Shown piece by piece: positions 17,701-58,379 of a stretch of 64,000 nt of DNA (its first letter is position 1; each line of letters starts with the position of its first letter). Location: contig CM060731.1 in NCBI GenBank assembly GCA_030704615.1, positions 70,060,001-70,124,000 of the forward strand, written 5' to 3'. The position numbers and the translations under genes are program-made. This DNA is from Takakia lepidozioides (lineage: Eukaryota; Plantae; Bryophyta). Under the pieces are notes generated by a model. It did no database searches and was not told the origin of the DNA. It saw nothing but the letters and a program-made list of their open reading frames with translations.

Positions 17701-19894
17701 GTAAAGCAAAGCGAGCAGCCGAGAAGATCGAGAAAAATGCTCTCAAGAAGACCCGAACACAAGAGCGACTAGCCAAGAGGGCCTTCGACGCCAAGTGGTC
17801 GGCACGAGCCTACAGCGAGGCAGGAGAGACGTCTGCATGCAGCAATCAAAGCAAGCAACCCCTCCCCCAAGCATGCATGGATCGCCCCATTGTGCGGGTG
17901 GGCTCCACCAATTTGTAAACACAATCAAAAAATTGCTATTGCTAAACGTCGGGCAAACGCCCGAGGGGAAGACACAAGTCATCTGCAGGTCGTAGGAGTG
18001 CCATGGGCGCATCAACCAGGTTCGGGACCACCTGTTGTAGAGCGGGTTGCTATCATGGCGGGCCAGGTGGGAAGGAGTTGCTGGGAGGCGACAGAGATGG
18101 CGGGAGGAATCAAGGTGGTGGCGGAAGAACAATAGGTGGAGAGCCGTGGTCTGTGACACTTGGATGGTCCAAATTAGTGCAGTGAGAGGTGAGGTTTCAG
18201 GCTGGAAAAGCACGCAGTTTGGCACACTTTGGATCATTACGTGCTTAAATAAGAATCCAAATCTAGGAGAGTGGGGTCCACTTTACAGGCAGGATTGACC
18301 ATTTGGCACACATTCACGGTTTCCCAAGGGCTTACTGGAGTTCATGCATCCGATCTCCCTTATTTCGCTACTGCACCATAGGATACCTTTTGCTCTTGTG
18401 GGCCGAGCTGTTGGGTGAGTTATTAGGTGTAGTAGTTGGTGTGTGGTTCAAGTGCACATCTCGTGCATATCAGGTCACATGTAGGCTTCATATTAGATAA
18501 TATTTCAGTGAGTTATGGTACCCTCTATAGCTCAGGCATAGCATTTTTGTGCCCTGCCACTTTGATAATATATATCAATTAACCACCTCATCCAAAATTC
18601 ATGCAATTCATACTACAAGCTGTTTGTTCAATTGCTCATCCAGTCATATAATTTTTCCCCTTACTGCACCAATTGTATGGGCATATCTGCTTAAACGCTC
18701 ACATTTGGGTGTAACTACCTTACTGTGCACCCTTGCATTCCGTGCACCCTCTGCTACTATGCATTGTTGTACCCTCTGCAGCATCTGCTATTGTGCGCTA
18801 CGCTAACCTCTTACGCTGGTACAGTCCTACGCACTCTGGCACGACTACCAAAACGCTTTTGGTGCTCCCTTTAGTCTATTCTAGAATGTTCTCTTACATT
18901 TGGGTATGGACTGCATATGGGCCCACATCCACTAGCCATGTGGGGCCTATGCAACTTCCCACATGCTTCAGACAAACTCATAGATGTCACCTGCCTCTTT
19001 GTCAATTTTATTTTTTCAGCGATTGGGGTACCTATTAGCTACGGGCCTCATACTTATTTTGGAGTTCTTCCAATTTCTTCCAAGTTCTTGTTTGACACTG
19101 ATGTAACAAATCACTCTTCCCAATGTTTGAGCCTGATACCCTTGCACTATCATTCATTACACCTTACCACTACTTACTGCCAACCTTAGAAACTTTATTT
19201 ATTAGGGCGACGCATTGCTCTACACTACTACTACTGGTGACTACTTCTAATATCAACGTTCTTTTTTATTGGAAATACATTGTATGCAAACAACAATATG
19301 AATAATATAAAAATATAATGTAAGCATATGATTTGATGGTACTTTTGTTGGCTTTAGGCGGCATGTGGGCTCCTCTGGTAGGTCCCCTGTTAAATCTTCC
19401 CCACTTAACCCTATTTTAACTAATTCTGAACTTTTGGCTTAAATCCGGACCAAACTTAATATGTATTAGAATTAAAATTAATTCAAAATTTGTTAATAAT
19501 ATCTTGGATAGTAATGTGTGATTGAACTTTGTGCAATTACAAGTGATGTCATACTTGCTTCAAAATGTAACATATAAGATGTCCATTTGACATTGAAGTG
19601 CTTGTGAAGTTGCAGTGTAACTCAACAATTCATTGAACGTCGACTGGGAAGTTGAATGATGTAATATTACATCATGTTACAATCACGATAAACAAATGTG
19701 TCGAATCGAACATGGGATAAACTCATAGTACTCTATCATACTTGATATAAGTTGATAGTAATTTTGATTGAATCTTCATGTTGACAAGCACAATATTCAT
19801 AGACAATGCCATTGGAATGATGTTTTGGGTGTGAGAAGGGCAGTAAAATATTAAAATAGCGTGAACATTAGGAAGATGACCTACTAGGGCAGTA

Positions 19895-21060
19895 AAATAA
19901 GGTTTGGGGTGTAACTAGATATATTAAGTGCAATAAGGTCCAAGTTTGTGGTGACTCGGAGAAGGGTTTAGGGTTTTAAAGGGTTTAGGATAGAAAGAGA
20001 GAAACAAATATGGACGACTCTAAACCTCTGTAGAATGTAAAAATGTAAGGGGAATTTGATGTCCATGTAATCATTCTATCATACGTTATCCAACTTGAAA
20101 ATTAAAGAAAACATTAAGAGAATGATACAAATTTTACAAGAGGTAACATGGTAGTACAATAAGGTTTGGAGTTTATTATAAGTAGGGTATTACACTAAGG
20201 TTTTGGGTATATGGTAAAAGTAATGGTTTAGGGTGCTAAGGGTCACGCTTAAGCTTGGGGTAAGGATTATTAAGGGAAGGGTAAAGGGAAAGGTAAGGGT
20301 TTAGGTTTTGGATTTAGGGTAAAAATGGACAAACAAATATGGAAGACTCACACATGGTAGTACAATAACTTGGTTTGGAGTGTAAGTAGGGTAGTACACT
20401 AACCTGGTTTTTGGTATATGGTAAGAGTACTAATGGTTTAGGGTAGTAAGTATCAGGCTTAAGCTTAGGGTAAGGATTAAGGCCAGGATAAAGGAATGGG
20501 TAAGGATTTAGGGTTTGGATTTAGGGTAGTTCAAAGGGACAAACAAATATAGAAGATTCACACATGGTAGTACAATAACTTGGTTTGGAGTGTAAGCTTA
20601 AGCCTGACACTTACTATCCTAAACCATTAGTACTCTTACCATATACCAAAAACCAGGTTAGTGTACTAAGGCCAGGGTAAATGAATGGGTAAGGATTTAG
20701 GGTAGTTCAAAGGGACAAACAAATATAGAAGACTCACACATGGTAGTACAATAACTTGGTTTGGAGTGTAAGTAGGGTAGTACACTAACCTGGTTTTTGG
20801 TATATGGTAAGAGTAATGGTTTAAGGTAGTAAGTGTCAGGCTTAATCTTAGGGTAAGGATTAAGGCCAGGGTAAGGGTTTAGGGTTTGGATTTATGGGAG
20901 TACACAAAGGTTTTTGGTATATGGTAATAGTTTAGGGTACTAAGTGTCCGGCTTAAGCCTATGGAAGGGTTAAGGGAAGGGTAAAACGAAGGGTAAAGAT
21001 TTAGAGGTGATGGTAAAGGTATAAATGGACAAACAAATATAGAAGACTCGCACTCACTAG
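19895..21060. repeat. TTTAGGG-rich subterminal tandem array (~200-bp units) with an internal inversion
   Basis: Unit anchor GGACAAACAAATATRGAAGA at ~20327, 20537, 20713 and 21027. Many TTTAGGG/TAAGGG motifs. ~20595-20668 is a reverse-complemented piece of the unit. Confidence 0.85.
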
Positions 21061-21421
21061 AACGAGACATTCCAAAAAAACATTTAGACCGGATTGGAAA
21101 AGAAAGAATCCAGGGGTTGTGCCATCATTTTTTTTTTGGGGTGCATTGTCTGTTTTGTAAGCCAGAATCCCCCATGTCACGAATATATGTAGATGAACAA
21201 AATGTACAGCAGTGCAGAGTCCAACACGACAGAAAGAAAATAGATGAACGTCCACTGCCCACTCGAGGTTCATTGCGACAGAAACAAAAGACAGGAAGGA
21301 TCACCAAACGCAAACACGAAGGGAAAGAAGCGTAAAGAAATTTTTATATCTTAAAATGAAAGACCGGAAATACCTCAACATTTAGTCCATGGATGGAAAA
21401 TGGTTCGCAAGAAGGAAACCT

Positions 21422-22300
21422 TCAGGTATCTGGCTGAAGGTTAGCAACCTCCAAATTCGTGTGCGCCTTCACTGCTTCCACCGCTGTAATTCTCTTGGTG
21501 TTATTTCTTGTCGTATTTTTTCGTGGCGGCATTGTCCACACGACATTGTTCACGTGGATCCATTGAGCAGGATCTGACGGGTTGTACTCCCAAACTTTTA
21601 ACCAACAGTCCCTGTACCTCTCAAAGTCTGAGGGGTTACCTCCTTTCTTCGGTCTCCACCACTCCACCTTCACTTTCTTAAAATTAGGATCTTCCCTTTC
21701 TCGGATGACATCTGAAATTGCCATTCCCATCCAGACCGGGCACGTCGTTGGGTCATGAGGGCGAACGAGCACAAAAAACCCTTTCTCAATGATGACATGG
21801 AGGAAGAAATTGAGGAAGAGGTTGACAAAGTGCTTTCAGAGCTTGCTGTGGAAACTGCTGCCCAGCTGCCTGCTGCTGCTGCACGAAGGGAGCGACTCAA
21901 GCAACCTGCCCAGGAAGAAGAACCTGAAGCTGACAAAGGGGTACAGTCTGTTCTTGCCTACCTCCTTATAGTTGTCTGCATGTCTGAATATCTTTCACCC
22001 CCTGCCCCTCTGTGTCACTTTTGTGTTTGTGTAGAGGACAGTGCTGATATCCCAACAGCCTCTGTAGATTCTGATCAACTCCCGATCCAACAGTGAATCT
22101 CTTTCCCAGATTGTCATGGCTCTGCTCGAGATCTTGTAGCAAACTCAAATGTCCTTGGACGCTCACACTTAGGCCACAGTAAGGTTCTGGAACTTCATCC
22201 TAGCTTCTTGAGGGATTTTGGCCGAAAACAAATTGGTCCTTAAACCATCGGAGGGATGGCATCCAGCCATCAGGTTCTGCCCTTTTGTCCTCCAGTGGGT
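21422..22300 (-). pseudogene. 3' (C-terminal) part of the Sola-like transposase
   Basis: THWRTK...DEVPEPYCG..ERPRTF (22300-22140), then IEKGFFVLVRPHDPTTCPVWMGMAISDV...VKVEWWRP...YRDCWLKVW (21790-21422). Same strand as, and a plausible continuation of, the ORF broken at ~43920. Confidence 0.65.
21790..21940 (+). pseudogene. VPS24: Captured fragment of ESCRT-III subunit VPS24/CHMP3 (C-terminal region)
   Basis: DDMEEEIEEEVDKVLSELAVETAAQLPAAAARRERLKQPAQ closely resembles the plant VPS24 C-terminus as I recall it. It interrupts the transposase antisense. Confidence 0.75.
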
Positions 22301-22399
22301 AGAATGAATTTATTTCTTTTTTCTTTTCTTTTTTCTCTCTCTATAAAGCACCATTTCATTTCATTTCATTTCATTTCTCTCTGTCAGTGAAGGTCAGGC

Positions 22400-22770
22400 A
22401 GGCATAGGGGTTGTATCAACCATATCTTCATCCTAAGCCAGACTATTCTGGGAGGGAATAAAGAATGAAAACCCACCTTTGTGATGTGGAGGATGATTCA
22501 CAATCTATTTGGGAACACCAAAAGTTGCGTAATGGTCAATGGCCAGAAGTCTAATTTCCTTCGAAGAGGGCAAGCATACCCATGCCCTCATCATGGAATC
22601 TGGATTGGAGGCAGATGCATGTGTGGGGAGTGCACTTGTAGACATGTATGCCAAATATGGGATAGTGAGGGATGCGCAGAAAATGTTTGACAAAATTCTG
22701 GAACGAGATGTGGTCTCGTGGACTTCAATAATTAGTGCATATGCCCAGCATGGGCATGGCAAGGAAGCTC
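22400..22770 (+). pseudogene. LINE RT fragment joined to a PLS-PPR fragment
   Basis: WRMIHNLFGNTKSCVMVNGQKS (RT-like, to ~22550), then FEEGKHTHALIMESGLEADACVGSALVDMYAKYG...DVVSWTSIISAYAQHGHGKEA. Confidence 0.75.
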
Positions 22771-23154
22771 ATACAAGAAGTGATTTTGACATATTACTGG
22801 CAGGGTCGCAGCAGTAAAAAGTATGCTTGTAATTGTACAGCAGAGAATGCTTATCAATAGGAGCTGGACAAGCTGCTGGCCAGCTTAAAAAGATCTGAAG
22901 TCTCTTTGATTCAAGCTGCGTTATGGTGAAGGCACTGGGGACGACCTCATCTGGTACTTCGGGGCATAGAACAATGGGCCGGATGAGAGTAGATGGACAT
23001 CTGTTTCAATAAACGGATAAATAAAGTCCAAATAAGTTTGAACCAAACAAGTTGAATTGAAGCTAAATCAAATAAATCGGTACTTGTATCAGATAACAGA
23101 AGCCACACGTGGAAATGAGATGAGATAATGGATGAATTCAATAGATTCAATGGA

Positions 23155-24967
23155 CGAATTCATCAATTTGTATACATGAAGTTGCAATTTCATCGGTTCA
23201 AATCGTCAATTTCACCACATGGAATTGACAATTTCATCACATAAAATTGCGATTTAATCAGTTCAAATTGTCAATTTCAACACATGAAGTTGCAATTTCA
23301 TCAGTTCAAATCGTCAATTTCATCACATGGAATTGACAATTTCATCAGTTCAAATTGTCAATTTCAACACATGAAGTTGTTGTCATGTGCATACATATCG
23401 CTACACAACTACATCGTTGTCCACAACCACACAACACATGTGCACACCGCTCGTTGGCCACGGGCTGCCCCATGATACCCCGTGGTACCACGTCCACGAG
23501 CCTTCACGACCCGCCATCCCCACGATCTGGTCACTGTGTCCGCACCACGGCTTCCCACGGTCACGGTCAATGGCCACGGTCAACTGTTCCCTGCGTTCCC
23601 GAGGCATTCCCGGACGTTCCTACACGTTCCCGAGCTCTCCCCGAGCTGGGGTTTGCTCCTACACTTGCTGCCGCTGAGCTATGGCTTCTGCGGAACCATC
23701 AACCCCGTCGCCCTGCACTCATGAGCTCTCACGGCCCACTAGAAGCGCCCCCAACTCAACAAACAAGCTATATGCTGCCCAACAAGCTCCATTTTCTTCA
23801 TGATCAAACTCACAAAAACAAATATGAAAATATACACATTTACAACTTTGGTGTACCTGCAGTTCTACTGCACATTCCCTGGCTCTAGGACGCCTAGTTG
23901 CTGCCCTTCCAACCCCACTCTTTCCACTCCAATAGCCCTTACAGTGCTAGAGTTTCAGATTGAAACTTCCAACTCAAGTACATGCTTCACAAGTGCACTG
24001 ATTTGCACACAAGAGGGACCAGCCCCCTCACTTCGCTCATACCTCTTCATGAGCTTGAAGCTGAAGCTCCCAACAGGCTGCGATGCATCCCCTCGCAGCT
24101 CCACTATTCAGCTGCTCCTCATCTACCCGTAACAACTGATTTCGGGCAGAAATACCTGGAGCTGATCATATCATCTCCAACCTGCAACACGCTAGCTTCC
24201 CATGCACAGCCCACATTCCTGCAGCTTGTTAACTCGGCCTACAACTGAAGAAGACGACCACTAGTTCACCTACTCGTGGCCAGCATCTCCTCCGCTTCAC
24301 ACTAGAAGCCCAAACTTGGTTGCCATAGTATTAAGTTATGCAACACTGATGGCCTCTCTATCCATTGCAAACGTGCAACCTATTCGCCTTCGCACTCTAT
24401 CCGCTTTGGATAGGCTCATGCACGGATCCCTACACTCTAGGCTGAACCGCTTTTCATGATCTGAGAACACAAGTGCTACAACTAGCTCAAACCTAGCACT
24501 CACGGACTCGAGCTAATCTTTTGGAGTGATAAAGGAAGAATAATACAAGCACACAAGCTCTCTCAAACTCACACACTTGCATATGAAAATATCACTCATA
24601 TATTAAGTCGAGCCAAGTGCACCCCACGCCATGGGGAATCCACACTACGGCGCTAGAGCTAGACGCGGTGAGGCTCAACTCGAGAAAGATGAGCTCACCG
24701 CGATCTGCCGTGAAGATAACAACGTCAGGTGTCCAAACATATATTGGCCCCTGGATTGACACTTGGATCAATCCCAAATGTCAATATATCAAAACTAACT
24801 ATTTCCTAGCTAGTTTCACACTAGTGATAAAATAACTTGACAATGCAATTTCCTCAGTTCAAATCGTCAATTTCATCACATAAAGTTGCAATTTCATCGG
24901 TTCAAATTGTCAATTTCAACACATGAAGTTAAAATTTCATCAATTCAAATCGTCAATTTCATCACAT
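23155..24967. repeat. TCAAAT(C/T)GTCAATTTCA tandem array, split by an LTR-like insertion
   Basis: Repeats at 23155-23380 resume in register at 24843-24967. Confidence 0.8.
23381..24842. mobile_element. Solo LTR or non-autonomous LTR-like insertion (1462 bp)
   Basis: Bounded by TGTCA...TGACA and interrupts a repeat unit. TSD only degenerate (TTGT/ATGC). No clear coding domain. Confidence 0.6.
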
Positions 24968-28999: not shown

Positions 29000-30788
29000 T
29001 TAAGTTCCCGAAGGTTGCAAGGACTCTCTACCAGACGAGAAACAGCACCGTCATCGGCACTCCAGCCTGCAAAGCTCAACTTGTCCCGACATGCCAGGGC
29101 TTGCTTCATGCCCTCTCTCCATTTCCTGCAAACTCTGCTGGCCCTGGCAGTCATCACCCATATATGAACGGGGTTGAGTAGAGAAAAGTGAAAGGAAGCC
29201 CGAGAAGGGGTCTGCCAGGAATCCATAGCCTGAGAGCGAAAAAGGTTGGTTGATGGTATTGACCCATTGATGTTCTTTATGGATTTCCTTGCCACCCTGT
29301 AGGATTGTCTTCCATTGATCTGGGATAGAGCAGATGATGGTTTGGATCCCAGCTACCAGCCTGTTTTGACCCAGCGCCATCCTAAGGGAATCCGAGTTGC
29401 TGTCCCACAAGTGAGCTATTTGCCAGAAGCCTCTCGTTTCCCATGCTGCCCATCGTCTAGCTTGTGCTCTCTCTAGAGGGGTTGGATTTGATGTATTAAG
29501 GAAAAGATGCTGCCTCATTGTTTCTTGGAAGGTGGCAGGCTCCGACTTGAGCAGAAATGGCCTAAATCTTTTCCAGGCTTTCCAAATGTTTTTCCACAAA
29601 GGCGATCCCACTGATTTGTGATTGAATCCCTGGGTTATCCACCTGGTGGATTGTTTCCAGTGAGTGCTCAGGAGAGGTGAGCTAAAGGCTATGTTTTCTT
29701 CCACCAGAAGTTTCCACCACCCGCCTTCGGGTCCCAGAAATCTGGGCAACCATTTTCCCAGCAGAGCGTGGATCTGCATTTCTGGGTCCAAGATACCTAA
29801 CCCCCACTCTTCTTTGGGAGGCATATTTGCCTCCATGACACCTGGGGTCTTTTGTTCCGTGTTGAACAGTTTGCTCCCCAAATGAAGTTTCTCACGCATC
29901 TTTTGACATCGTTTAGGAACAACGAATCCGGGCCCCAAGTGGAGGCAAAGTACCAAATGCCTGCCTGTAGCACCTGGTTTGCCACCAAAGCTTCCTGTAA
30001 TGGTGAGAAAGCGTGATCCCCAGTAGGTTAATTTTCTCTTGAGCGTGGCTAGAATGGGCCCCATTCTTTGGTTCTCTGTAAGGTCTTACCAAAAACGTAT
30101 CCTAGCAGTGTTGTTGACTCGCCCGATGCCAGCCAGATTAGACCTATTTCAGCCCCCCATGAGGGGTTATTGCCTATTTTTGATTGTGCGAGGTCTCCCA
30201 CCAAGATTGCATTGGTCTTACTCCAATTGACCCTGAAGCCGGAGACCTCACAGAACTGGGTTAAAGTATCATGGGCTGCCTATAGGGTGTTGGGGGTGGC
30301 ATCAAGTAGTAAGAATGTATCGTCAACAAACATAGAGTCTTTTACTTGGGATTTGGAGCCCAGACCTAGGGTTTTTTATCCTGAGGCCTTGCACCGAAGC
30401 TTCAGAGTCCAGCAGGTAACCTAGGGTGTCAGCCACAAACAAGAAAAGAAAGGGAGACAACGGGCATCCTTGTCTAGCCGACCTGTGGAGTAAAAAAGGA
30501 GCGGAGAGATGGCCATTGATCAGGACTCTGCTAGTGGATTGGTAGAGAAGGATTTGAACCCATTGACAGAAGTTTTCTGGGATGCCTGTCTTTCGAAGAA
30601 CCGCCAGAAGGAAGGTCCAATCTACCTTGTCGAAGGCTTTCTCAAAATCTAGCAACCATAGGGCCAGGGCCTGGTTGTTTCTGGAAGCATATGAGGAGGC
30701 TTCTTGAGCAAAAGGATATTGTCGAGAATGTACCTACCTTTAATAAAACCAGCCTGGCCTGTCCTGATAAGCTGAGGGAGAAGGGGCT
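29000..30788 (-). mobile_element. LINE (L1/Tx1-like) ORF2 reverse transcriptase fragment, frameshifted
   Basis: GQAGFIKGRYILDNI; LDFEKAFDKVDW; RQGCPLSPFLF; FVDDT; VSGFRVNWSKT; ICLPK..GLGILD. Confidence 0.92.
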
Positions 30789-30796
30789 AGATGTTA

Positions 30797-30858
30797 CTTT
30801 CTCCTCTCACTATGCTTAATTTGTGAGTGGTCGCTCCCAGGTATTTTCCTTATATATT

Positions 30859-36800: not shown

Positions 36801-37243
36801 ATACTTGGAAAGTCGTGGGATGTCAGATGATTGTGAAATGGTGGGGCAAGTGTGGGTTGTTGATGACATTTGATAAAGGTTTTCAAGCGGAGGCTATGGA
36901 ATCAAATGCACATGCTTCCCTGTTTTTCAGCTTGGAGGACGATTGTGAAGATACTGATGAACAACAAGACATGGAGGAGTTGTTCGAAGATGATGATATC
37001 ATGGATATGATGCTCCAATGTGCTATGAGTGAAGCTTGAAGTGCATTAGGTTTAGTTGCTAGTTGATAAGTAGATTCAGATTTGTATTTTCCATTTTCAA
37101 CATATTTTCCTTCAATTTTTATTAATTCGGACATTGTGAGATTGAAATTTCTCGAATATTTCAGACAAAATGGTTCAATTTTCTCCATATTTTTGGACGG
37201 TGCCGTTTTTAATTAATTATGTGCGAAACCGACCCGCGCGTAG
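33809..37243 (+). mobile_element. pogo-like (Tc1/mariner superfamily) DNA transposon with intron-containing DDE_1 transposase, decayed
   Basis: TIRs CCGTACGCGCAGGTCGGTTTTGGCAC / GTGCGAAACCGACCCGCGCGTAG, flanked by TA. GRPRK AT-hook, VINTDQT, DKRQIT, LPLQIIFTGKT, LIDCWSVH, CTSKLQPADV (ORF 36188-37039). Confidence 0.88.
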
Positions 37244-42315: not shown

Positions 42316-42319
42316 CCTT

Positions 42320-43919: not shown

Positions 43920-46470
43920 ATCGGAAATTCGTTTGGCTTATCAAGTTCAGCGAGAATATTTCCCCAGTATTGGTCATATTGTTCCATCACACCCCAGTAA
44001 TGATCGTCAAGCAACATTCCTTTGGTCCAAAAATCTTTGTATTTCTTAATACCATTTTTTATGAATGATTGTTTTTCTGAGGAGTCGTCCCCGACTCCCC
44101 ATATCGGTCTTCTTGGAACGGCATCTGGGTCTCCTTCAGGGAGATATGGAGTCCCATCAGGATTGGACTTCCACATCTTAACGCTGGAGTTTGTAGGAAG
44201 CCACTCCGAATTAGTAGATGACTTCTTGTACTTCATAACGGGCCAATCATCCGCATCCTTAAAAAATCGAAAGACGTGCATCTCTGAGATCCCCACCAAA
44301 GCCTCATTTCCATCATGAATACAACCCTTAACAAACTTCTTGAAGTCGGGAACCTCCTGTGTGATTTGAGGAATGAATTGCATATCTCATCAAATCCGGA
44401 AGAATGTAGGTGTTGTGTTCCTTTAGCTTATTCGAGAGATAGCTAAAGAATCCGTCAATATCCTCATGGATGTGCCCAACCATGAGAAAACATCTTTGGC
44501 AGTGAGGAGGGATAGGAAAGCAAGCATCCATCTGTTCTTATTGTCCTTGGAGGAGTTGTCCATCTGCAAATAAAGTCGTCTAGGAAGTGGTCGAGCACCA
44601 CGTTTATCGGGCGGCCTGCAGGGTTTCAGAGCCTCCAAACATCTTGATTTATCTCTCATGAGCGTTTCAAAAAAATCATTTTGAACTTCAGTGTCGAAAA
44701 TGTTCCTGGATTCCCGGCATGTCGGCTTTTCCAGTTGGCACAGGCACCGAGCCAGCGACCCAATTGTGAAGTTTGAATTGTCTTTCCAGAACTCAAGGGA
44801 AAATTGAGCGTAAGCTCCATCTCCGTGTCCGTGCGTAACCATTCCTGTCAATGAGACAGACAACTGACCCAATCCGGAGACCATCTTGTTCGTCGTCTGT
44901 AGCCTCGGAATAGCCGTTTTCCTATGATCCATCTTTCATGAATAATACATAGGAACTCCTCCGGAACCATAACGGACTCATTCCTCCAGCTATGGTACAA
45001 CCTTCTGCATGACTCTTGATGCCTCAAGTGCAAATCAAGCGCCCGTTTATGTGTGACCTGTTCGGAACTTCTCTTAATCGACTTCTTGATCAAGTCCTTG
45101 AATATCTCGCATTCTGTGCACTTAACAAAGGTGCTTCCTGTTTTCCGAACCTCCACGTTAGGAAATATTCAATTCCGTATACGGCTTATAGCTGGCTGCG
45201 AGACTCCTTTCAAACCGAGCAGTCTGTTTGTTTGCACCCCAACTCCCCAACAATGTCAATGTCCACTGGGCAGTGGAGGTTCTACAAAGTGGAAGAACAA
45301 GAAAGCATGATGGCATCAAAAAGAAAAAAATCATCCACAGTATTTTGAAAAACGAAAGGGGACAACGAATAAAAGTCACCTCGTTGGACTCCTCTCGAAT
45401 TCTCTTCCAGTTCATTTCAGGTGGCAAAATTCTCAAAGTATCCCGACATCCCTCTCCAATGCAACGTGTTTTGTGAGGCATAAGGTCAGTATTGGCATTG
45501 ATAATGGACATAATGTTCCCCTCTGCCTGGAGTGTCCCTGGTCGCGGCCGCTTGACGCCACGATTTCCTTGGAAAGATGACAAACAGCCCTCTTTACTGA
45601 GCTTTTTGTACTCCATGTACGTTGACCTTCCAATTCCGTGTATTATCCACCATGCTTTCTCGCAAACATCAACATCTTCTATCGTAACAGACGACATGCG
45701 CGATGACCCATCCATAATGTGAAGTCGTTTTGAAACATTCAATCCAAGTTCTCTCCTCTCAAACCCCAAAATGCAGTACGAATTGCCAAGGTTTTTCTCC
45801 AATCAAAATATTGGCAGCACTGAAGCTTGCAGCAAGGTTTGCTGCTCACCGACCTCACTTCATCCAAAGTGAGATTTTTCTTGCACTTTTTTGAGTCCTC
45901 CATATTGGATGGATTTTTCTTCCTAGTAAAATGCTTGTATGCTGCTTTCAATACGCCTGTACCATGGTCGTCATTCTCCATGTCACTGCATGATCGTAGG
46001 AAATTTTCGAGATCAACGGAGAGTATCCGACCATTTTCAAGAAGTCTTGTTTTTGTTAACGGCCATTTCACAATCGCCATCAGTGAACCGGACTCTCCAG
46101 AGATTGTTCTGGTGACCAAAACCCCAACATCGTCCTCTCTGAGTTTGTCATTCAGAATGATCTCGTTAGGAATGCATGCCTGAATTCGGCCTTCGAACAG
46201 GGCGTTTCCGTCCTCCCCAAGAAGAAGACACTGCAAGTTTCTCCAACATTCTCTCCCCAGACCTGCAGGCAGACCCCCCCCAGTCTCACCGTTGGACGGA
46301 ACATCATTGCTTTCAATGCTTTGTCCTTGATAATCACTACATTCTGTGATGGAATGACATCCTGGGTTTCTCGGGGATGATGAATCCACAGTTTCATGCG
46401 TGCGAACACATGACACGTCCCACACAACTGGAGTCCCAATCGCCTCCTTCAATGTGTCAGCATCCATGTG
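43920..46470 (-). pseudogene. Sola-like DDD transposase, N-terminal and catalytic part (frameshifted, at least one intron)
   Basis: CCKLQCC..RTAFW; VCEKAWWIIHGIGRSTY; FVKCTEC; LCIIH../MDHRKT; LYLQMDNSSKDNKN; FLMVGHIHEDIDGFFSYLS; VPDFKKFV; HVFRF. The 5' start is uncertain (ORF track extends to 46860). Confidence 0.8.
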
Positions 46471-48049
46471 TCGATAAGGCAGAGGACAGGAGCCAAATGC
46501 GTCATCACAAAAGATCAGGGTAACTGAAATGGTGGATGAACACAAGTGGTGTCCGTGGCAAGTTCCATCCCCAGAAATATTCAGGCAATCTCTTGAGGCA
46601 ACAACTGAAAGAGATCCAGGAAGTGACAGAAACACCTTTTGGCCAACTTGGAACCCCATGAAGTTAGTAACCTCCACTGGGCAGTGGAGGTCCAGTAAAA
46701 TCCTATTACCGGATTGAAGAGTAACTGAAGGAAAGAAAGTCTTGCCACCGAAAGGAGAAACTTTAAGTATAACTTTTTCGACGGTTTTGAATGAGAAAAC
46801 AATATGGATTGAAAAAGTATAGTCAATGTTTGGATCTACACTGGGACTGATAAAAAACAATTGGAATTAAATTGGAGTATGAGGGCGGAGTATAGACTAC
46901 ATCTATCGGAACTATCAGATGAAGTCACAATTGCCAACCTCCACTAGGCAGTGGAGGTTGGATGATATCTGTTGATGTCATCAACCACATGGATGAACAA
47001 TGGATAATGAAGAAGTCATTGGTACAACATTAAAAACTCCCTATTTTCGTCTTCTGTTTCATGTTTTGTGTTGGCATGTTCTCAGTTTTGTGTTGGCCCG
47101 CTCTCGATTTATGTGGCCTGTTCAAGATTCAATTCGTTTGGATCCTGCTTCATTCTCTGCTGCACTGCACTGTCTTCAGTGCTTCAGTCCGTGCTTTAGT
47201 GCACATTAGGTTTCTGTTTCATTGTTTGCTTTGTTGTTTGCTTCAATGCTGTTTCATTCTCTGTCAATTCATTTCACTCCTGCTCCATTTTGTGCTTCAG
47301 TGCATTCCTGCGTCATTGCTTCACTGTTGTTTTTCAATTGACCGATGGTTTGTAGGGTGGTTTTGTGTGGTCGTTTTGTATGCAATTGGGTTTGTGTGTG
47401 CTTGTTCTGGTCGATTAGGGTAATGGTTTAGGGTGGCGGGAGATTACCATGCTGGTTGTATTGCTTGTTTTGTTCATTGTGGTGGTTTATTGAGGATAGT
47501 GGTTTCGGAAATGCCCGGATGTTTATTTCTCAACCGTTTTCTTGATCCCCAAATCCAGCGTTAGTTGATGCATTTCTTCCCATTCAAATTCGATTCTGAA
47601 TGGAAATTTTCATTTCTTATCCAATTATGTCGAATTCGGCAATTCTGAAAAACCACGATAGCCTAATTTACTTGTATTCTACAGTAGACATATGCTAACA
47701 GTAGGCTTCGTGCAGGCCAGAGTAGAGTATTTGTAGACCCATGTCATGCACATGAGCAACTAGAAACTGGAACCTCCACTGCACAGTGGAGGTTCGCGTG
47801 AATTCTGTATGCGGAAGCTGAAAGGCATTTTTTTAAAGTATGGACAAAATCGGATAATTACGGGAAAATTGAAATCAGTTTGAGACGATGTGGGAACGAG
47901 TGATGGAATCATATGTGTAACATTGTAAGTGTGACACATACTTTCCAACGAGACTGGGATACAATAATTGGGAACCTCCACTACCCAGTGGAGGTTCGAT
48001 ATTTCTTTGGGTCAGCCAGTTACACACTCTGATTAGTTTTTATGTCAGA

Positions 48050-48703
48050 ATGAGAAAGTGGAATGAGGGTGGGGAACCGGTGTTTGACGATGAGTACAAG
48101 ACAACCAGATTAAATTGGAGCAAGAGACGGTGTTCGGTAGACGTGATGGAAGCGGATCGTCCAGATCAAAAACATAGTGTTTCAGAACTAGATGAAAAAT
48201 CCAGTTGGGGGTCTACCGAGCCGAACAAAGTGTCTGTCAATGACGAAAATGTGACTGTAGAATCCCCGCAGAACGCATCCGAATCTCCGAACAATACACC
48301 TGAAGTCATCTGTAAGGATACCCTGGCGGAAATAAGAGAAAGCGTTCATGTAAACAATGATATCAACGGATTTCCTACCTACTCCCAAGATTATCCAACA
48401 TACACCCCTTCAGACTATTCCCCAGACACATTGGCGGCGATACGAGTGACCGTTTTTGGATATCCAGCATCTCCGGGTTACTCGCTAGCATCTCCTGAAT
48501 CCACATCAAGATCTGAAGGATATTATCCTCCAAACTTCCTCCTGGACACTGAAACGAGCGGGGGAGTCCTGGAACTACTGGACGTCTCCGGATCTCCAGG
48601 ATACTCCCCTGCGTCTCCTGATAGTATCACCGGATCCCCAAAATATACCCCTCTAGACTATTCGTCTGATACACTCAGAGAGATAAGAAGGAGCATTCTG
48701 TAG
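48050..48703 (+). CDS. 217-aa S/P/Y-rich ORF with Pol II CTD-like motifs (transposon cargo)
   Basis: Open frame. PTYSQDYPTYTPSDYSP, SPGYSLASPES, SPGYSPASPDS, SPKYTP. Three DTLxxIRxxV/I repeats. Confidence 0.6.
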   Translation: MRKWNEGGEPVFDDEYKTTRLNWSKRRCSVDVMEADRPDQKHSVSELDEKSSWGSTEPNKVSVNDENVTVESPQNASESPNNTPEVICKDTLAEIRESVHVNNDINGFPTYSQDYPTYTPSDYSPDTLAAIRVTVFGYPASPGYSLASPESTSRSEGYYPPNFLLDTETSGGVLELLDVSGSPGYSPASPDSITGSPKYTPLDYSSDTLREIRRSIL

Positions 48704-49025
48704 TTCTTGGGTATATAATCTAGAATCGTCTGAATATAGTGTGAGAAGTTCCTTAGTATATTTTGGACGAATTAGGTTCGAAGATTTCTATTGTAGATTA
48801 GTCCTGTTTCAGGATGATGTACTCAATGGCTCCTGAGCCTCATTTTCATTAAAGGTTTTTCCTTCAACATCTGTAAAATATGGAGGATTTCCCATTTCAT
48901 GTAGAAAGACTCGTACATACAAACCTCCACTGTCCAATGGAGGTTCTCATTTCTGGAATGATGGATGCTAGTAAGAGAGATCATATTATTTGATTATCTA
49001 ATGAATTTGTGTTTGGTTGTAACAG

Positions 49026-52000
49026 AAGACATCCTACACCACCAGATTGCGTCCCGAGATTGATTGGAGATATTTGTGGCGCATTCGTATGCCGGAAGTC
49101 CTCACATTTCAAAACTGAGCATACCGCTATTTTTGAGCTTACCCCAGAGGTGACAGATTGGGGCATCGTGCCTGTCGGTACACCTCCTGATCACAAACTG
49201 TCTTTTCATTACAGAAGTCTTGGAGTAATAACAGACTTAAAATACGCAGAAGCTCTCGATATAGAGCTTGAATCTGAAGAGGAAAACCCGATGTTGGTTT
49301 TGTTCCTGCATGAGAATGCGAGAACCCCCAGGACGTTTGGTTTCAAAGTGGAGGTGGGTCGTCTGAACAAGTCATTGATGAGTGAATGCGTAGAATTGGG
49401 TTTTAGATTTCCAGACGAGGGCTCAGTATTTACAGACGTAGGTTTGTCGAGAGCCTGGAGTATTTTTCTAGATCTTCTGCACGCAATGAGGAACGACATT
49501 CGCAAGAAGCGAGCACTACAGGAAGCATCAGAGCCGAAGAAGGGAAAACGCAAGTCGTCGACAGCCGGCAATGATGACAATGAGGCCGGGACTTCCGCAG
49601 GAAAGAAGAAACAGAAGGAGGATCAGGATCCAGCATTGATGTCAGATAACAAGAGACCTAAAGCTGGGGAGATTTTTGACAAGGAAAAATGCGAGAAGAT
49701 GGAGGAGAGGCTCATGAAGGAATACAATGATGTATTTCCATTCGGATTCAAGAGTACCTTCCTTGTGAAGGTTTCCATGATGGAACTAGCTCCAAGGAGC
49801 ATGGTTTACAGGCCGTTAAATATCAAGCATAAGGACGAAGTGAAAGCGCGACTCTTCCAACTTCATTTGTTCGACTCGAAACATCCGGTGTATCTTGCGC
49901 CAATCAACCATTCCAATCCAGAGAAGATTGCTTCATCGCGACCGAAGCAATGGAAAGAGATGGACGTATCAAGGTTCTTCGTAATTGGTGGACAACACAC
50001 CATCGTGGCAGCAAAGGTAATGGACTTCATTTCCTCCCAGACCTCTCTTTTAACGAACCTCCACTGGGCAGTGGAGGTTGGTGTTGAACTACAAAATTGG
50101 ATATATCCCCACACTTTCAACTCTCTCATCCATTTTACATTAACTGTAGCAGGAACTTCTCGAGGATCTTGCTGACGGCGAACTGAAGGAGTATTACCGA
50201 GAGTGGCCTGCGAAGATTGTATGGTCTACCGATGAACAAAGGCTCCTGAAGTTGTCAAAGCTCCTCAACGATCCCAATAAGGCGCAAAAGTTTGATACAA
50301 CAATGCCGGAGAAAGTTGCGTATGCACGAATGTTATTCAACCTGAGGGGGAAGCCAAAGAAATACAACGATCACATCACCAAGTCCGAGACGAAACAATG
50401 GAAGGTATGCATTTATGGAATCAAAATCTACTATTCACATTCATTTTATGCTAAATAATACTTCTGTTGTCGGAGTGACAACTAATTTATCCCTGAATGA
50501 ATGTGCATGAGTTCATGTTTGCCTATCATTTGATACTTGAAATGGATAGCATTAAGGAGGCAATGGTCCTGGTACTTTGCGATGACGACGTTTGGAAGAT
50601 CTGGGAAGATGTTTTCAAAAACTGGGAGCAGGGAAAGCTACTCAACCCGCTTGGGATACAGTACAAGGGTGAACAGCAACAACTCACGAAATCTGCTATC
50701 ACAAAGCTGCAAGGGTTGAACAGATGGCAGCTGATAAAAGTTGCGCAGAAAATCTTGGACCTGAATAAACCGGCGCATTTTCATGTCTTCTATGTACTTG
50801 TTCATGCCTTGAATTGATTTGGTGTGATGGAAGTGTTGGGGTGGCCTCGGAGGAGCAAACAGTGCACGGAACCGTACACTAAGGACGAGTGGCGTGAAGT
50901 GAAGAGAAAGTACCAGAGTTCTCAACATTTAAAGACAAACTGGGGACGGATTACATCCAAAGCAAGATCAAGATGAACATGGAGACAAAACCACTCACGG
51001 CCGTTTTTGTTAAGTACGTCTGCTCCATCAAGAAAGCTTATGAGGATAGAGAGGATGCCATGGTGATTATTTCAGCGAGTTTCAAGACTCATTACGCTAT
51101 CATGGGTGGAGAAACAAAATTCGTCAATGCCAAGTCTCGTCTGCGACTCGCACCGAAGAAACGGTTTGACAACATAGCGATGGTGTTCATCAATACAGTT
51201 TCTGAAGACGACTCTGACGTATTTGAGTCCAAGGATTATGTGAACATACAGGAGGCCTTTGTGGCTCAGAAAATGAACACGAGTGCTTTTGTTTTCTTCT
51301 CGACGCAACCGTCCTCGGCCAATCTGGTCTCCTACATCCAAAATGGTCCCGGAAGAACATCGTATCTTGTCCGTCAGGGATTTTATGTTCCGGGAGAGTA
51401 TGAAAATATTTACAAAAACAGCACGAAGACTTTATCTCAGACTGTACTGTGCCTGGACTATGTTTTTCCAGTGACACCTGAGGAGATGCAGAATCCGGAC
51501 GAGCACATCTCCACCTCACTGTTAATCGAGCCAATACAGCCGATTCTGGAAGGGCCCTCTGAGAAGCCATCAGCTTTTGAAGAAGAGTGCATGACATATA
51601 ATCATGAGCTACAAGCTAACACATACAACTATTTGGCCTCCCTGTTTTGTCGAGACGAGATGTCCGCTGTCAACATCTTCGGAGGCGTGATGTTGACGTA
51701 CGCCCTTCATGTAAGTGTAATTTTTTTTTGCATTTTAAATACGAATTTTACATTTTTGATCGAACACGTAGGCAAGAAACATTCGAGTGCTTGACATCAA
51801 CCACTCAACCACAAAAACGTTTTGCAAAGGAAAAGTTGAAGCGAATTTTAAGAAGCTTCAAATTGAGAATGACAATGTTGCTGAAGAGGTTGACGACGGA
51901 GACGATGATGAGGATGAGGAGGAGGAAGATGAAGACTTGGAAGAAGGAGGCGGACATTCCGAACACGGAGAGGAGGACGAGGGCATCGATGGTAACAGGG

Positions 52001-52539
52001 ACAACAAGGGCCACGATGGTGACAATGCCAACCGTTGGGAGGCTGGACACCTAGATGTGATACATGACTTCAGAACTCACTCACAGGATGGTATTGAGAA
52101 CATCACCCAAGACGTTGCGGTCCACAATGTCGTGATTCTGGATGGGGATTCGTCAAGTTCAAGCGAGAGAACTAAGAGTAATCCTGCTTCACCATCAAGG
52201 GGTGCGGAGGCGAGCTCAATCGAGGTGCGCGGCAATTTTATTGGGAGTGCAGACGACTAGTTCAAACCTATAGAAGGGGACAAGCCGGCGCCAATGTCCC
52301 CGTCTCCCACCAAAGAGAGGGTAGAGAGAGCGAGGACAAAGAGCCCGTGTCCCACAAAAGACAACGGACACAGAGGGAGGACTAAGAGCCCGTCCCCCGC
52401 AAAAATGGACAGTTGTGACAGAGCCAGGACTAAAAGCCCGTCTCCAAGAAAAAACAGCGGAGGCAGAGGCCGAACTCAGAGCCCAACTCGCTCTCAAAGT
52501 GTCTCCCAGCATGTCAATTTGGATGTAGGTAACGAATGA
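49026..52539 (+). pseudogene. Multi-exon cargo gene: ParB/Srx-like domain, degenerate methyltransferase-like region, acidic tract, RxRTKSPSP repeats
   Basis: ORF segments 49009-50016, 50153-50403, ~50541-50770, 50973-51710 and 51771-52539, several with GT/AG edges. VYRPLN...PVYLAPI...FFVIGGQHTIVAAK; YLASLFCRDEMSAVNIFGG. Premature TAG at 52258. Confidence 0.55.
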
Positions 52540-53129
52540 CACCTGGAGATTTATGGTGTCTTTAAGCATTATAAATGGAACAAATTGTGTGTATTGCATC
52601 TGGTTGTGTTCTGGTTGTGTTTTTGCCAATAGCTAATATGTATCTTGATATTTCCCACCTTCTTCAACATTACATGTGACTGATGGTTACGAAAACTCGT
52701 ATAGATCCATGAACGGAAATTGGAGGAAATCACACAAACCCGGACAGAATCCATCGCGACTCAAACAGTGAGGAGGCAGGTGGACTTAACAATAAGGGCC
52801 GGCCCAACTGATCCGGTCAAACAAACAACCTCCACTGCCTAGTCGACGTTGCGAGATGGAGGAGATGAGCCGGAGATGGTCGTTGCTCACCGCGAAGGAA
52901 AAGAGAGCGAACAGCAACAACAGCAAATTCGGAACCCCTCCCCGAAACGGGTATACACCTCATAACCATCTTAGCTATGTTTTTCTTTGTCCTTCTTCTA
53001 GTTTTCAAAATAAATTAATTGTTCCGTTATTCCACAGGATGATATGATTCACCCTCCAATCGACTATCACAAATCTGTGAACCCACAGGATTGGTATCGC
53101 CTCTCTGAGGGACCGAAATGATCTCGACC

Positions 53130-53760
53130 AGGATACTACGTCCTGGTTCTTGACGTCGGTTACCTTGGTGAGGTTTACATCCGAGATGGTCCGAGATCCC
53201 CTCCCGCAACCCATCCTTGTGTGTGCGCTGGAAAATTCAAGCTTGCAGTCCGAAATGGGTTGGACGACTTCCTGAAATGGGTCCTTAAGCATTTTGAGGT
53301 ATACTTTTGGAACACTGGACCGTTAGAAAATGTCCTGGATATAGGGCTGGCTTTGTTTGGAAGAAGGGTTTACAAGGTTAGGGAATTCAGCAATGAGAAC
53401 TGCGTGAAGCATAGATAGACGTTCAGTGCCGAATGGCCCAAATATCCAAAAGCGCCAATATATCTTAAACGAGTCTATGACCTTTTCACTGTAGACGACC
53501 CTGTAGCGTACAAATCAAACACACTTCTTAGCAATACTGTAGAAAATATGTATAAGTCGTACTTGAACCCAAAGTCGCTCGGTATCTTCCTTCCAAAATA
53601 TAAAGCGCTCGTCGACCCATACAAGGACAGGTTTCTTCTTGATGAACTCAAACCGCACCTGAAAGAGTTGCGGTTATCCGGAAAAGACGCTGATATATTC
53701 AACGTGGAAAAACCCATAGGATGGCTCTTGACTATGGATTTGCAGAGTGCAGGTTTATCT
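53130..53760 (+). pseudogene. FCP1/SCP-like HAD phosphatase domain, copy 1 (disrupted)
   Basis: YYVLVLDV; VRNGLDDFLKWVLKHFEVYFWN; IYLKRV; SNTLL; YKSYLNP; FLLDELKPHL. Confidence 0.7.
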
Positions 53761-53926
53761 TAGAAAACAAAAATTTCCTGACGCTCATTGGAACAGTTTG
53801 AACGTAGATGGCTTCTGCTCTAGATTTTCATGAACCTCGACTGTCCAGTGGACGTTGCTCCTAGTGTCAATCTTGTCCTTGGGTTATCTTGATTACCACC
53901 TGAGTGGTTGTATGAATTTCTCACAG

Positions 53927-54520
53927 ATTGCAGCACCAGTTTCTCCAGTTGCGAAAGGATTGCGCTTGTTGATAATTTTTGACCTGAATGGAGTTTTGTG
54001 CAAAGTCTTGAGCACCAGAAGAGCTATAGTGTCCCCCAAATGTCCGAGACAATACTGATACCAACTCTTGTTGGATTTCAACTTGTCTATAGGCGGGGAA
54101 AAAATCGTGAGATGTAGACAGGTTGAAACAAACATTTCCGTCTAGGTATTGGAGCTGCATGATGTACAAGAACTGCAGCCTATCCTGGACTTTATGCTTC
54201 GGGGTTTCCTCAGCCGACATCGTTATGTCTCAGGAAGATTGTATCTCCGTCTACTTCTGTCCACCCTCAATTTATATCAGGATACGACTCGCCGAGTCTA
54301 TTCTTTGAAGCCATTGATGACGGTCTGGCAAAGATTTGGTGGTCAGTATAACCTGAGTAACACTCTACTTATTGATGATTCAGCTATTAGTGTGTGTGTT
54401 GAACCCGCCTGAATCTGCCTGATTCTAAAATCGTTGAATCCGTTGAGACGGACTCTTGCTATCTCCAGACGTTCTTCAGAAATATTTGCTTGAAATGAAG
54501 AAAATCCTCACACCGTTTCC
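53927..54520 (+). pseudogene. FCP1/SCP-like HAD phosphatase domain, copy 2 (disrupted)
   Basis: LLIIFDLNGVLC; SQEDC; LKPLMTVW...YNLSNTLLIDDS. Confidence 0.78.
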
Positions 54521-56283
54521 AGTTATCTAGGGAAAGGAGGATAGGACTTAAGCCTTGTCAGAATGTTTCCACCGATCCCAAGTTTTAAAGCCTCTCCTGG
54601 ATTATGTTATGATTCTAATTACGGGAATCTCCGATGTGATGCTTCAAAATAAAGATTTTATTGATCAACCACGTCTGTGATTCAAGTGTTTATTTTTGAT
54701 GGTTTTTATTAGGTTGTATTGTTTTTCTAGAAAAAATGTTGTGTACTGTGATTTCCTTTTCAATCTGAATTGGACATGGAATTGTTTGCTATTTCCTCGT
54801 CTCATCCATGCATTTCTCCACCCCATACCATCCCGATCCTTTGAGATACAGGCCTTCTCCGAAACTCATCTCAGGGGGCTTTTTCAAATCCAACAACCTC
54901 CACTGTGCAGTGGAGGTTATCCCATATCTGTACATTGACCTTGTAAGTTTGATTCTGCAGGTTCATGGCGATGCTGCTGATGCCAACTTCTTGTCGGGAC
55001 CTCCATTGGAATCCTCTATATCAGAAATTCGTCTACAGAGGGAAAACGTTCACACTACTGTTGAGATTTCTGTTATCGACGGTGAAACATCATCCAGGCA
55101 CTTGGCTTCCCTTCAATTGCACGACCCTCTTCTTCAGTCCATTCCTGAAAATGATGTTATGTCGCAGGATTGTTTAGGATTGAATGTCGAAGATGGAAGC
55201 CAACTTGACAAATGTGCAAGGGATTTCGTGGACCTCACTCTACAATCCTACACCTCCGTGTTAAGTGTCAATGGTGTGAAATCTACCTCGAGAATGTCAT
55301 CCGTTGAGGACGCGGCTGAGGCTGCGGCTCCGCAGCACAATGTTGTCTCTCTTCCCTCCTTCTCTCCCCAGCACGAAGGTTGGATAGCCCAAATCAGAAG
55401 GAATCAGGTAAAATTACTTATATCTGAATTCTAACTCGTCCTTTTGTTTTCCCTAGTACTGGGTCTGATGTTCTTGTTTTACTCCAGGCTAGAAAATCTG
55501 CGGATTGTGACCTTCCTGTCAAACGACGTTTTCATTGGAAATCTGTTCCGAGGTAATCCCTTCGTTACGTGTGAATTCCATTCAGGATGTGGAGTGCTCA
55601 ATGGACAATTTCCATTCCATTCCCCTTCTCCGAAACCCTTTCAACGAGGACAAAGACGAAACTTCAATTGCAACTTCTGGGCTTCTCGACCCTGCAGTGT
55701 TGGCGCAATGTTCTGCACCGAGGAAGCGGAATAGGCCCCCCAACCATTTCCATCTCTTCTACAAATCGGTTCCACCGGATAAGTCCTTCGTCAGAGACAA
55801 AGCAGACTCGAGGAAGAAAAGGAATACCTCGGACATACCGGGGTCTCGTCAAAACACGTCCATTGGGATGCCAAGCCCGCCAGCGAGACTTTCCAATAAG
55901 GCGACATCGATATTATTCGATATCATTTTTATTATTTTATTTATTTTTTGTTCATTTGGTTATGCACTAATTAACTTCATCTTTTCTCAACAGGAGGGGA
56001 TGCAGCACGATACCTTCATCAATTTCCCTCTGTACAAGGTACTTTCCTGAACCTCCACTTGGAAGTCGACGTTCCTCTTCTTAGCAATATTCACCCTCCT
56101 CTTGAAACATTCCAAGCCCACAACATTTTGCAGTATTTTGCCATTTTCTGCACAATCGTGTTGATCTTCCATACACTCAATCGTTCTGGGTCGTGGGTAT
56201 TTTTCATGGCAGAAACACTAATGTCAATGTGTGATTAACCTGCTCAGGATAACTTTGTCTCTCATCCTTTACATGCAACAGCG

Positions 56284-56863
56284 GGGAAGAGGAAACAAAT
56301 GTTGTTAATTTTGAGTGTCAACGGACTCCTCTGCTACCGGCCACCCCCAACCGGCGGTGAACTGTTTAAGGAGAAATTTCGTTTCAGAAATGTGACACTT
56401 CAAGTTCCTGACAGACCGTTTTGTGGTGCCTCGGCCTGGAGTCTTGGAGTTTCTGGACCTTGCATTGAAGCATTTTCACGTGGCCATTTGGTCATGTGCT
56501 GATAGAGGTGTTCTTTGTAGGATGTTGGAGAGCTTCGTCCCCACGAAAATAGCGAAGAAGTTTTGCTTCATATGGTCTGCTGAGGATTATAAGGATACCA
56601 CCGGTTATATCAGGCCCGGGATGAAATATCTCTTGAAGGATATTCGAAGTGTTATTGTCAGGTACCCTGGTAGACCGTTTGCTACGCATGGGCAAATACT
56701 TCTTGTAGATGATGAGCCATCAAAAGACCTGCGAAACCCACAAAATACTGGATTCTTCTCTTTCTCATTCAAGCCTTCACCAAACGGATTGCAAGACCGG
56801 GATGATATGACAAAAGCAGTGTGGCCATATATCGGAGATGGCTGGAGCTTCAACAGTCGTTGA
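56284..56863 (+). pseudogene. FCP1/SCP-like HAD phosphatase domain, copy 3 (frameshifted)
   Basis: LLILSVNGLLCY; VPRPGVLEFLDLALKHFHVAIWS; FCFIWSAED; LLKDI; ILLVDDEPSKDLRNP. Confidence 0.82.
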
Positions 56864-58379
56864 TTACATTAGCGAGAACCGGACAAAGTGTTCCCATAAG
56901 CCTATTGGTTGAGACCATGCCTGCTGGGCCTGGTATGGAAGATATCTTGATCCTCGTATTTGGATCCCACAACAAAAGGAACCTGATTACCTTGGTAGGC
57001 ACGGTGATCCACTCTTCTCATGTTTGTTCATAATTTGATTTTCCAATTCTTTTGCAGCTGCATTTTCACTCTTACCTCAACATATCCATATGCAAAACTT
57101 CTACTTTGGGCCTAACATTTGTCATTTCCGTCGCTTGTCCCTAGTTACATTCAAGGAACGAATTCTAAAAGAGGAACAAGAGCTGCGTGATTGGGAAGAA
57201 TGGCGGGCGTGCCGGGAGGCTTCAAGGGCATCAAGTAGAGTTGGCAGTAACATTTTAGGTGACAATGTCAGCCGGTTTCACCTTCCTGAAAGGATCTCCG
57301 TGTCCTCTGGAGCGGAGACCGTTGCAAGTGGCTGTTGTAACCGGAGGCGTCTTCGGACACATGCCTTGACTGCGAGCCGTTTGGGAGGAGACTCAGTATT
57401 ATTAATGAGTTAGTATAAGCCGTAACGGTTCTATGCCTTCAGAATCTATGGCTTGTATGGCATTAAGTCCATGAACGGATGAACAGTTGACGTTCATTTT
57501 TCTGTTGGTCCATCGCCTTGAATGATATAATCTCAAATAAAATATGAATGTTTCATAACTCGTTTTTCCATGTTGTGAGTTGATTGATCGATATTCTTGA
57601 CAGGTCCATCCTCACCGCACTGAGTAGTAGCATTAGACCTTGATACTAAACCGGATAGGACCCGGAATCAGCCACTTCTATTCTTTGGGTCCAGGACATT
57701 CGGGTGGATGACATTCGACTGGCCTTCGTCCTTCGACTGATTGTTTGCATCGGATTTCAGTCCCCATCATTGTTTCATATTTGGTTCTACCATTATTCCA
57801 TGTTTGTTACTGTATGTCATTTTGGATATCGGAGCTCTCATCATTGTTTGATTCATTGCATCCTCCCATTCCTTTTAATGAACGTCAACTTGGCAGTGGA
57901 TGTTCATCTAAGACCACAATACATACTTGTATTTTTGCGTAGAATGTGTGGAGGATTACATAATTTGTTGTTATATAGTGCACAAATAGTCAAATAATTA
58001 TAGATATATCTCTTTATTTCTATTATAGATTCTAATTATTCATATATCTTGTATTATTTCTGGACCAAACAAAAGTCCAGAATTAGTTAAAATAGAGTTA
58101 CTTTGTCTTATTGCGGATTCATTATTAAATATTTTAGAATGCGATTGATTGATTCTTGATGGATAGTAATATCACATTTGGCTTCTATGGTTCACACCAC
58201 AAAACACCTGAAATATGTAGATAAAATAATAATTATTTCAAGGGTTTGCAAAAAGCAGTGGTTAGTGTGATGGTAAAGAGCAATTTGTGATGAACATGAG
58301 GTTTGCTGTTCAAATCTTGGCAGGTGACATTGTGGCGGTAAATAGCTCTCGATGAGAGACTCTCAGAGTCTGAATCCTT

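Follow-up and report, generated by a model that had tools for sequence, protein, structure and literature searches.

Sola transposons encode DDD transposases, produce 4-bp target-site duplications (TSDs) and end in terminal inverted repeats (TIRs) of 11-1124 bp; most are 2-9 kb long, some exceed 15 kb, and the superfamily is present in the moss Physcomitrella (review PMC10741241). Dictyostelid Sola2-Fanzor chimeras reach 10-15 kb, have 4-bp TSDs and short TIRs, and include an additional, unrelated gene (PMC3627910, 2013). A 2025 study of Ectocarpus describes giant Sola1, KDZ and EnSpm elements that are generally >10 kb and sometimes >30 kb and that contain nested insertions, pseudogenised transposases and accessory genes; one of them, Sola1-1_Ec32, is 21.5 kb long and has an opposite-strand gene with ParB-like and DNA methyltransferase domains (PMC12477816). 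Here we analyse a 64-kb window (the whole stretch of 64,000 nucleotides, positions 70,060,001 to 70,124,000 of contig CM060731.1) from the bryophyte Takakia lepidozioides, which holds a TIR-bounded element of this kind at 19407-58099. We consider it very probable that the element is one copy of a large (~16.5 kb) Sola1-type cut-and-paste transposon that inserted at an ACTT site and later decayed, with a ~22.1-kb mosaic of foreign DNA within its transposase gene.

The original prediction for this locus, made from the sequence alone, had taken Sola elements to be normally a few kilobases long with one gene and knew of no giant multi-gene Sola family. The size range reviewed above and the 10-15 kb Sola2-Fanzor elements do not bear out the first statement, and the second is outdated, given the Sola2-Fanzor report of 2013 and the description of the 21.5-kb Sola1-1_Ec32 in 2025.

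Element ends, split transposase gene and inner block

Direct reading of the left end showed CCCC, the duplication ACTT (left TSD, 19403-19406) and then AACCCTATTTTAACTAATTCTGAACTTTTG (left TIR, 30 bp, 19407-19436, plus strand). The right end reads CAAAAGTCCAGAATTAGTTAAAATAGAGTT (right TIR, 30 bp with two mismatches to the left, 58070-58099, minus strand) followed by ACTT (right TSD, 58100-58103). A 30-mer TIR query allowing up to three mismatches matched exactly two sites within the window, which are inverted and 28/30 identical, and 100 shuffles gave an expectation of 0 for such a pair. When the two ends were aligned with each other, their likeness stopped at base 30. Mismatched bases next to the repeat at either side rule out any extension, which fixes the duplication at exactly 4 bp. 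The locus is one TIR-bounded element of 38,693 bp with a 4-bp TSD, its ends correctly called; TIRs of this length and identity, 38.7 kb apart and flanked by an exact ACTT duplication, were what had been predicted.

Inward of the left TIR lies a subterminal arm (19437-21436) with ~210-bp units in direct and inverted order at 20146-21053 and a degenerate copy of the family palindrome described below at 21247-21270. Within these units, two 76-nt arms (20392-20467 and 20593-20668) are 97% complementary around a 125-nt loop and could form a hairpin RNA if transcribed.

Minus-strand open frames at 46.9-43.8 kb carry DUF7869 (Pfam PF25273, E=1.7e-17). An exhaustive profile search with a 169-residue core piece returned 509 relatives, among them full-length proteins of 1,100-1,250 residues, many proteins of the liverwort Riccia sorocarpa and sea-urchin proteins named DUF7869. 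When the homologue P0041 was compared with the window by tblastn, its residues 37-888 matched 46623-43943 and its residues 978-1092 matched 21775-21473, both on the minus strand; P0044, P0154 and P0163 aligned in the same manner, residues 1005-1123 of P0044 covering the C-terminal piece. Since full-length homologues are colinear across both pieces, the left arm carries the end of a gene whose body is in the right arm. The main body, a Sola1-type DUF7869 region, occupies 43934-46623, and the C-terminal part, corresponding to the last ~115 residues of the homologues, occupies 21437-21790, where tblastx to three related loci (L001, L003 and L004) gave matches as well. The presence of transposase pieces in both arms, as the original prediction had it, was therefore confirmed.

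The catalytic motifs were located on the minus strand at 44915-44935 (KMD), 44531-44569 (LQMDNSSKDNKNR) and 44445-44480 (VGHIHEDIDGFF). Whereas the homologue P0160 is contiguous in a single frame through the catalytic core, the window copy contains three frame changes, one at 44935, where LCIIHE and KMDHRKT share a single base, and the others near 44490 and 44380. An uninterrupted transposase frame is absent: the core is shifted in frame at least three times, and a 22-kb block separates the positions of homologue residues ~888 and ~978. Because of these frameshifts and this interruption, the transposase copy is, as judged from its reading frames, a pseudogene, and the element is dead and cannot move by itself.

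Five related loci (L001-L005) were fetched; their transposases are colinear and come from other families. In one of the contigs (L005), two same-strand DUF7869 fragments lie 4 kb apart (5234-6250 and 10001-10936), which represent a related element present in tandem or in nested form. In L001, L003 and L004, elements from other assemblies, tblastx placed the two transposase parts 200, 208 and 490 bp apart, respectively. Parts spaced so closely in three relatives indicate that the ~22.1-kb block at 21791-43933, whose breakpoints are approximate, is a secondary insertion. Pfam searches of the block identified a weak Snf7-like fragment (about 21790-22096, plus strand), a PPR fragment (22539-22817, plus strand), a LINE reverse-transcriptase fragment (29051-30655, minus strand), a gypsy integrase fragment (31676-32346, plus strand) and a pogo-like DDE_1 gene (35376-37039, plus strand), and a repeat search identified a 1.9-kb array of palindromic ~60-bp repeats (40244-42132). 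No long terminal repeats or other terminal repeats that would make the block a single element were found flanking it, and no transposon common to the block and the window flanks was found. By its content the block is a foreign mosaic of retroelement, pogo and host-gene pieces, amounting to more than half of the element's length, and reads as nested junk rather than cargo. The core element without it would be ~16.5 kb long, and 38.7 kb does not represent the size of the family. An inner block had been proposed at 22.3-43.9 kb, leaving ~17 kb; its start lies nearer 21.79 kb, and the core is closer to ~16.5 kb.

Two structures within the block were observed in their own right. The array at 40244-42132 is foldback-like, ~1.9 kb long, with at least 15 units of ~60 bp that each contain an internal palindrome of the GGGACCGCCAGAGTTGGCAGTCCC type, and its ends (40260-40304 and 42069-42113) are 96% complementary. 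In addition, a 43-bp tandem repeat forms two arrays 1.5 kb apart (23142-23380 and 24760-24967), which could mark the two ends of another nested element.

The cargo arm and the family palindrome

Plus-strand open frames at 48.0-57.4 kb diverge from the minus-strand transposase inside the TIRs, and these frames bear out the predicted layout of a transposase on the minus strand and a cargo arm on the plus strand. The cargo exons were searched individually, without a joined spliced model. The first frame, at 48050-48703, translates into a Ser/Pro/Tyr-rich repeat (SPGYSPASP, YTPSDYSP) resembling the tail of RNA polymerase II; its Pfam match, to RNA_pol_Rpb1_R, was sub-threshold (E=0.17).

A candidate ParB/Srx-like exon lies at 49651-50030, with FFVIGGQHTIVAAK at 49975-50016. 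The ten best tblastn matches of this frame in 2.3 Gb of phage DNA were all ParB-type proteins, which belong to two phage groups unrelated to each other (E=1-4), and hhalign against a profile of 32 ParBc proteins aligned GGHHR with GGQHT (P=6e-4, probability 29%). The nearest named Atlas clusters were fungal DUF3723, which we treat as a lead only. The frame had no match in Pfam or PDB, a homologue search with the 388-aa frame and with its 174-aa ParB-like part found nothing, and a single-sequence AlphaFold model was unusable (pLDDT 39). The likeness of this exon to ParB is weak. For the open frames at 50497-51794, neither a match nor a methyltransferase signal was found in Pfam, PDB, Atlas or the phage tblastn search, and their single-sequence AlphaFold model was also unusable (pLDDT 36). 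Three cargo frames searched by sequence against PDB had no meaningful match.

FCP1/SCP (NIF) phosphatases have the catalytic motif DxDxT. The cargo arm contains an FCP1/NIF-like domain at 53122-53415 (Pfam PF03031, 23.4 bits against a cutoff of 21.8), in which this site is degenerate (VLVLDVGYL at 53140-53166), and another at 56239-56863 (PF03031 at 56423-56863, 27.2 bits against the same cutoff of 21.8), which lacks the first aspartate of the motif (LLILSVNGLL at 56302-56331). A possible further FCP1-like domain between them, at 53834-54412, was recognised by motif only (LIIFDLNGVL at 53969-53998); it had no Pfam match and a weak blastp match to L001. With LDVGY, FDLNGV and LSVNGL at the DxDxT sites, the FCP1-like domains are probably inactive as phosphatases.

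A 24-bp palindrome, AACCTCCACTGnnCAGTGGAGGTT, occurs at 11 sites, one at 21247 and ten from 45258 to 54918, against 0 expected by chance, and none was found in the window flanks or in the 21.8-43.9 kb block. The palindrome that had been described as private to the element and present in both arms is thus confined to the arms. Four of its sites (46669, 46936, 47771 and 47973) fall in the region between the diverging gene arms (46624-48049), and another, at 50056-50079, follows the candidate ParB/Srx-like exon and is probably in an intron.

Assembled contigs from public runs were aligned to 55300-61000 at >=90% identity; the depth summed over them is no copy number. In one run, the summed depth was 2,300-11,400 in every bin from 55.3 kb through the TIR-end bin at 57974-58164, so that it stayed high along the right subterminal arm (56864-58069) up to the bin containing 58099, and it was 230-700 in the six bins beyond, a 10- to 45-fold drop; single contigs in the flank had a depth of ~45. 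That run yielded 4,221 contigs aligned at >=90% identity, 384 of them at >=99%, and near-identical pieces also occurred in the run of a second study (a plant metagenome). The fall of contig depth in the TIR-end bin indicates that the family is multi-copy: the terminal 2.8 kb of the cargo arm appears to be repeated tens to hundreds of times, with the repeat ending in that bin. Exact-protein look-ups of two window frames, seeking other copies, found no record. We conclude that the cargo arm belongs to a multi-copy family, as the palindromes are common to the cargo and transposase arms and the arm is multi-copy up to the TIR. Of the giant multi-gene Sola-like family that had been proposed, the multi-copy nature (by contig depth) and the opposite-strand cargo arm stand, whereas 38.7 kb is not the family's size, some 22 kb being a later insertion.

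Superfamily and alternative readings

In the sequence of events that we propose, the transposase would have bound to the TIRs, cut with a 4-bp stagger and inserted the element at the ACTT site; after insertion, ~22.1 kb of mosaic DNA would have entered the 3' part of the transposase gene, and at least three frameshifts would have arisen in its catalytic core. Several points weigh against our reading. The block breakpoints have an uncertainty of a few hundred bases. The evidence that TIRs, TSD length and cargo agree from copy to copy is the contig depth along the final 2.8 kb of the arm, and no second copy of the same family was read. Searches by tblastx, blastp and Pfam upstream of the transposases in the fetched relatives, whose transposases are 40-60% identical, revealed no cargo homologue, and neither this TIR nor the dispersed palindrome was found in L001; the cargo arm is either lineage-specific or diverged beyond detection. 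The Sola1 assignment is motif-based, not tree-based. Apparent frameshifts may also stem from errors of a long-read assembly, but the presence of three, together with a 22-kb insertion, makes this unlikely.

A further such point, that nothing supports the block being exclusive to this copy, leads to the alternative that survives best, namely that the block is a nested insertion that has become fixed within a sub-family and is carried along when the element transposes, as reported for giant algal transposons. This alternative would have to accommodate a block that interrupts the transposase gene and is free of family palindromes; the block is also missing in three relatives, though these are other families. 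We consider such a passenger block improbable, though still a better candidate than the explanations that follow.

The motifs of the window transposase are KMD / MDNSSKDNKNR / GHIHEDID, and when eight DUF7869 proteins, taken from plants and one animal, were aligned, the D, DN and K columns varied hardly or not at all. In the gapped core rows printed in the supplement of Majorek et al. 2014, Sola1-1_AP reads FDLEK / SDNCGGQNRNR / GHTQS, Sola2-1_HM reads TDGCAGQYKNCK and SHG, and Sola3-1_HM reads SDNASSYHGN; two further Sola2 transposases have DFKEN, then DGAKHFKS or DNARHFKS, then HGKSD or HGKSE (Bao et al. 2013, PMC3627910). Compared at the motif level, the window transposase follows the Sola1 pattern (D...; DNxxxQN(K/R)N; GH(T/S)...D), unlike Sola2 and Sola3. 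The ACTT on both sides agrees with the 4-bp TSD of Sola elements (PMC10741241), and the 30-bp TIRs (28/30) fall within the Sola range of 11-1124 bp. On its motifs, the transposase is of the Sola1 type. The original prediction had noted that a 4-bp TSD and DNxxxxNKN / GH...D motifs fit Sola; set against the published motif rows, the fit is to Sola1 specifically.

The element could instead be a DUF7869-type transposon outside Sola, its resemblance to Sola1 motifs being convergent or superficial. Pfam assigns DUF7869 no superfamily name, the literature searched does not mention this domain, and our comparison with the Sola1 reference was limited to core rows rather than the full-length protein. 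The three motif blocks, however, match the Sola1 row in order and content and differ from those of Sola2 and Sola3, the 4-bp TSD fits Sola, and relatives of DUF7869 occur in plants and animals alike, so that we regard a position outside Sola as quite unlikely. Least tenable is a chance composite in which the two ends come from different partial copies with host DNA between them: the middle 22 kb does contain host-gene fragments (PPR and Snf7-like) and unrelated transposons, but the matching 4-bp flanking repeats, the complementary, non-overlapping pieces of a single transposase gene, colinear and equally oriented, in the two arms, and the palindromes restricted to both arms make such a composite very unlikely.

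What the cargo arm of this Sola1-type transposon does can be suggested only tentatively. A helper protein might read the family palindromes through its ParB-like domain. More broadly, the land-plant Sola1 elements could be an undescribed branch whose helper, combining a ParB-like reader, FCP1-like domains that have lost catalysis and a repeat resembling the polymerase tail, binds the 24-bp palindromes of its own family where they lie in promoters and introns and thereby recruits or protects transcription of family copies; we hold this to be a speculative and rather doubtful proposal. Its basis in the window would be the parts alone, namely the palindromes, the NIF domains and the weak ParB signal. 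If true, it would represent a transposon-encoded, sequence-addressed self-recognition system, and the family would allow the idea of a transposon protein recognising its own copies to be put to the test. The copy itself is a case of ordinary decay, and the family is of moderate interest for transposon biology. For annotation, the DUF7869 genes of bryophyte genomes would be Sola1-type transposases.

Flanking sequence and comparison with known systems

Outside the element, the left part of the window contains an intron-less PPR-DYW gene of 1,467 residues (7356-11759, minus strand), which marks the host as a plant. Its middle (8236-10656) consists of eight tandem 303-bp units that are 76-84% identical and carry one PPR triplet each, an unusually regular arrangement, and a 110-bp inverted repeat with 80% identity (2017-2124 and 13773-13876) encloses 11.7 kb including this gene. 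PPR-like fragments in the right flank (59500-60460) reached a summed contig depth of up to ~640,000 in one run, compared with ~45 for single-copy contigs, which indicates that PPR motifs are present in enormous numbers in the genome. A pogo/Tc5-like element (HTH_Tnp_Tc5) lies in the left flank at 16067-17126. Relatives of it with 44-52% amino-acid identity occur at 1933-2109 and 13038-13355 of L004, beside the DUF7869 element there; that assembly is therefore probably from a related plant. No tRNA genes or Rfam families were found in the window.

The transposase, TSD and TIRs agree with the Sola superfamily of Bao et al. 2009, as represented in PMC10741241 and PMC3985635, in the DDD type of the transposase, the 4-bp TSD, the TIR length and the Sola1 motifs. 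As described there, the superfamily includes members >15 kb and members in moss, and most are 2-9 kb, unlike the element analysed here. The dictyostelid Sola2-Fanzor chimeras resemble it as large Sola elements with a 4-bp TSD and a second gene; unlike it, they belong to Sola2, with the motifs DFKEN / DGAKHFKS / HGKSD, and their cargo is a TnpB-like Fanzor rather than a ParB/FCP1-like arm.

The closest counterpart is found among the giant elements of Ectocarpus, compared here with the part of that report available to us (PMC12477816). Like Sola1-1_Ec32, the Takakia element is a giant Sola1 (21.5 kb there, a ~16.5-kb core here) with an accessory gene opposite the transposase and inside the TIRs, and nested unrelated transposons and a pseudogenised transposase are found here as in the Ectocarpus elements. 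Unlike in Sola1-1_Ec32, the ParB-likeness here is weak and no methyltransferase signal was detected in Pfam, PDB, Atlas or phage tblastn searches. Conversely, at least two FCP1/NIF-like domains and a dispersed palindrome are present here, neither of which is mentioned for Sola1-1_Ec32 in that part of the report, and the host is a land plant rather than a brown alga. We regard the family as the land-plant version of a design already published for algae; with it, the giant two-gene Sola1 layout reaches land plants and gains FCP1-like domains and a dispersed family palindrome.

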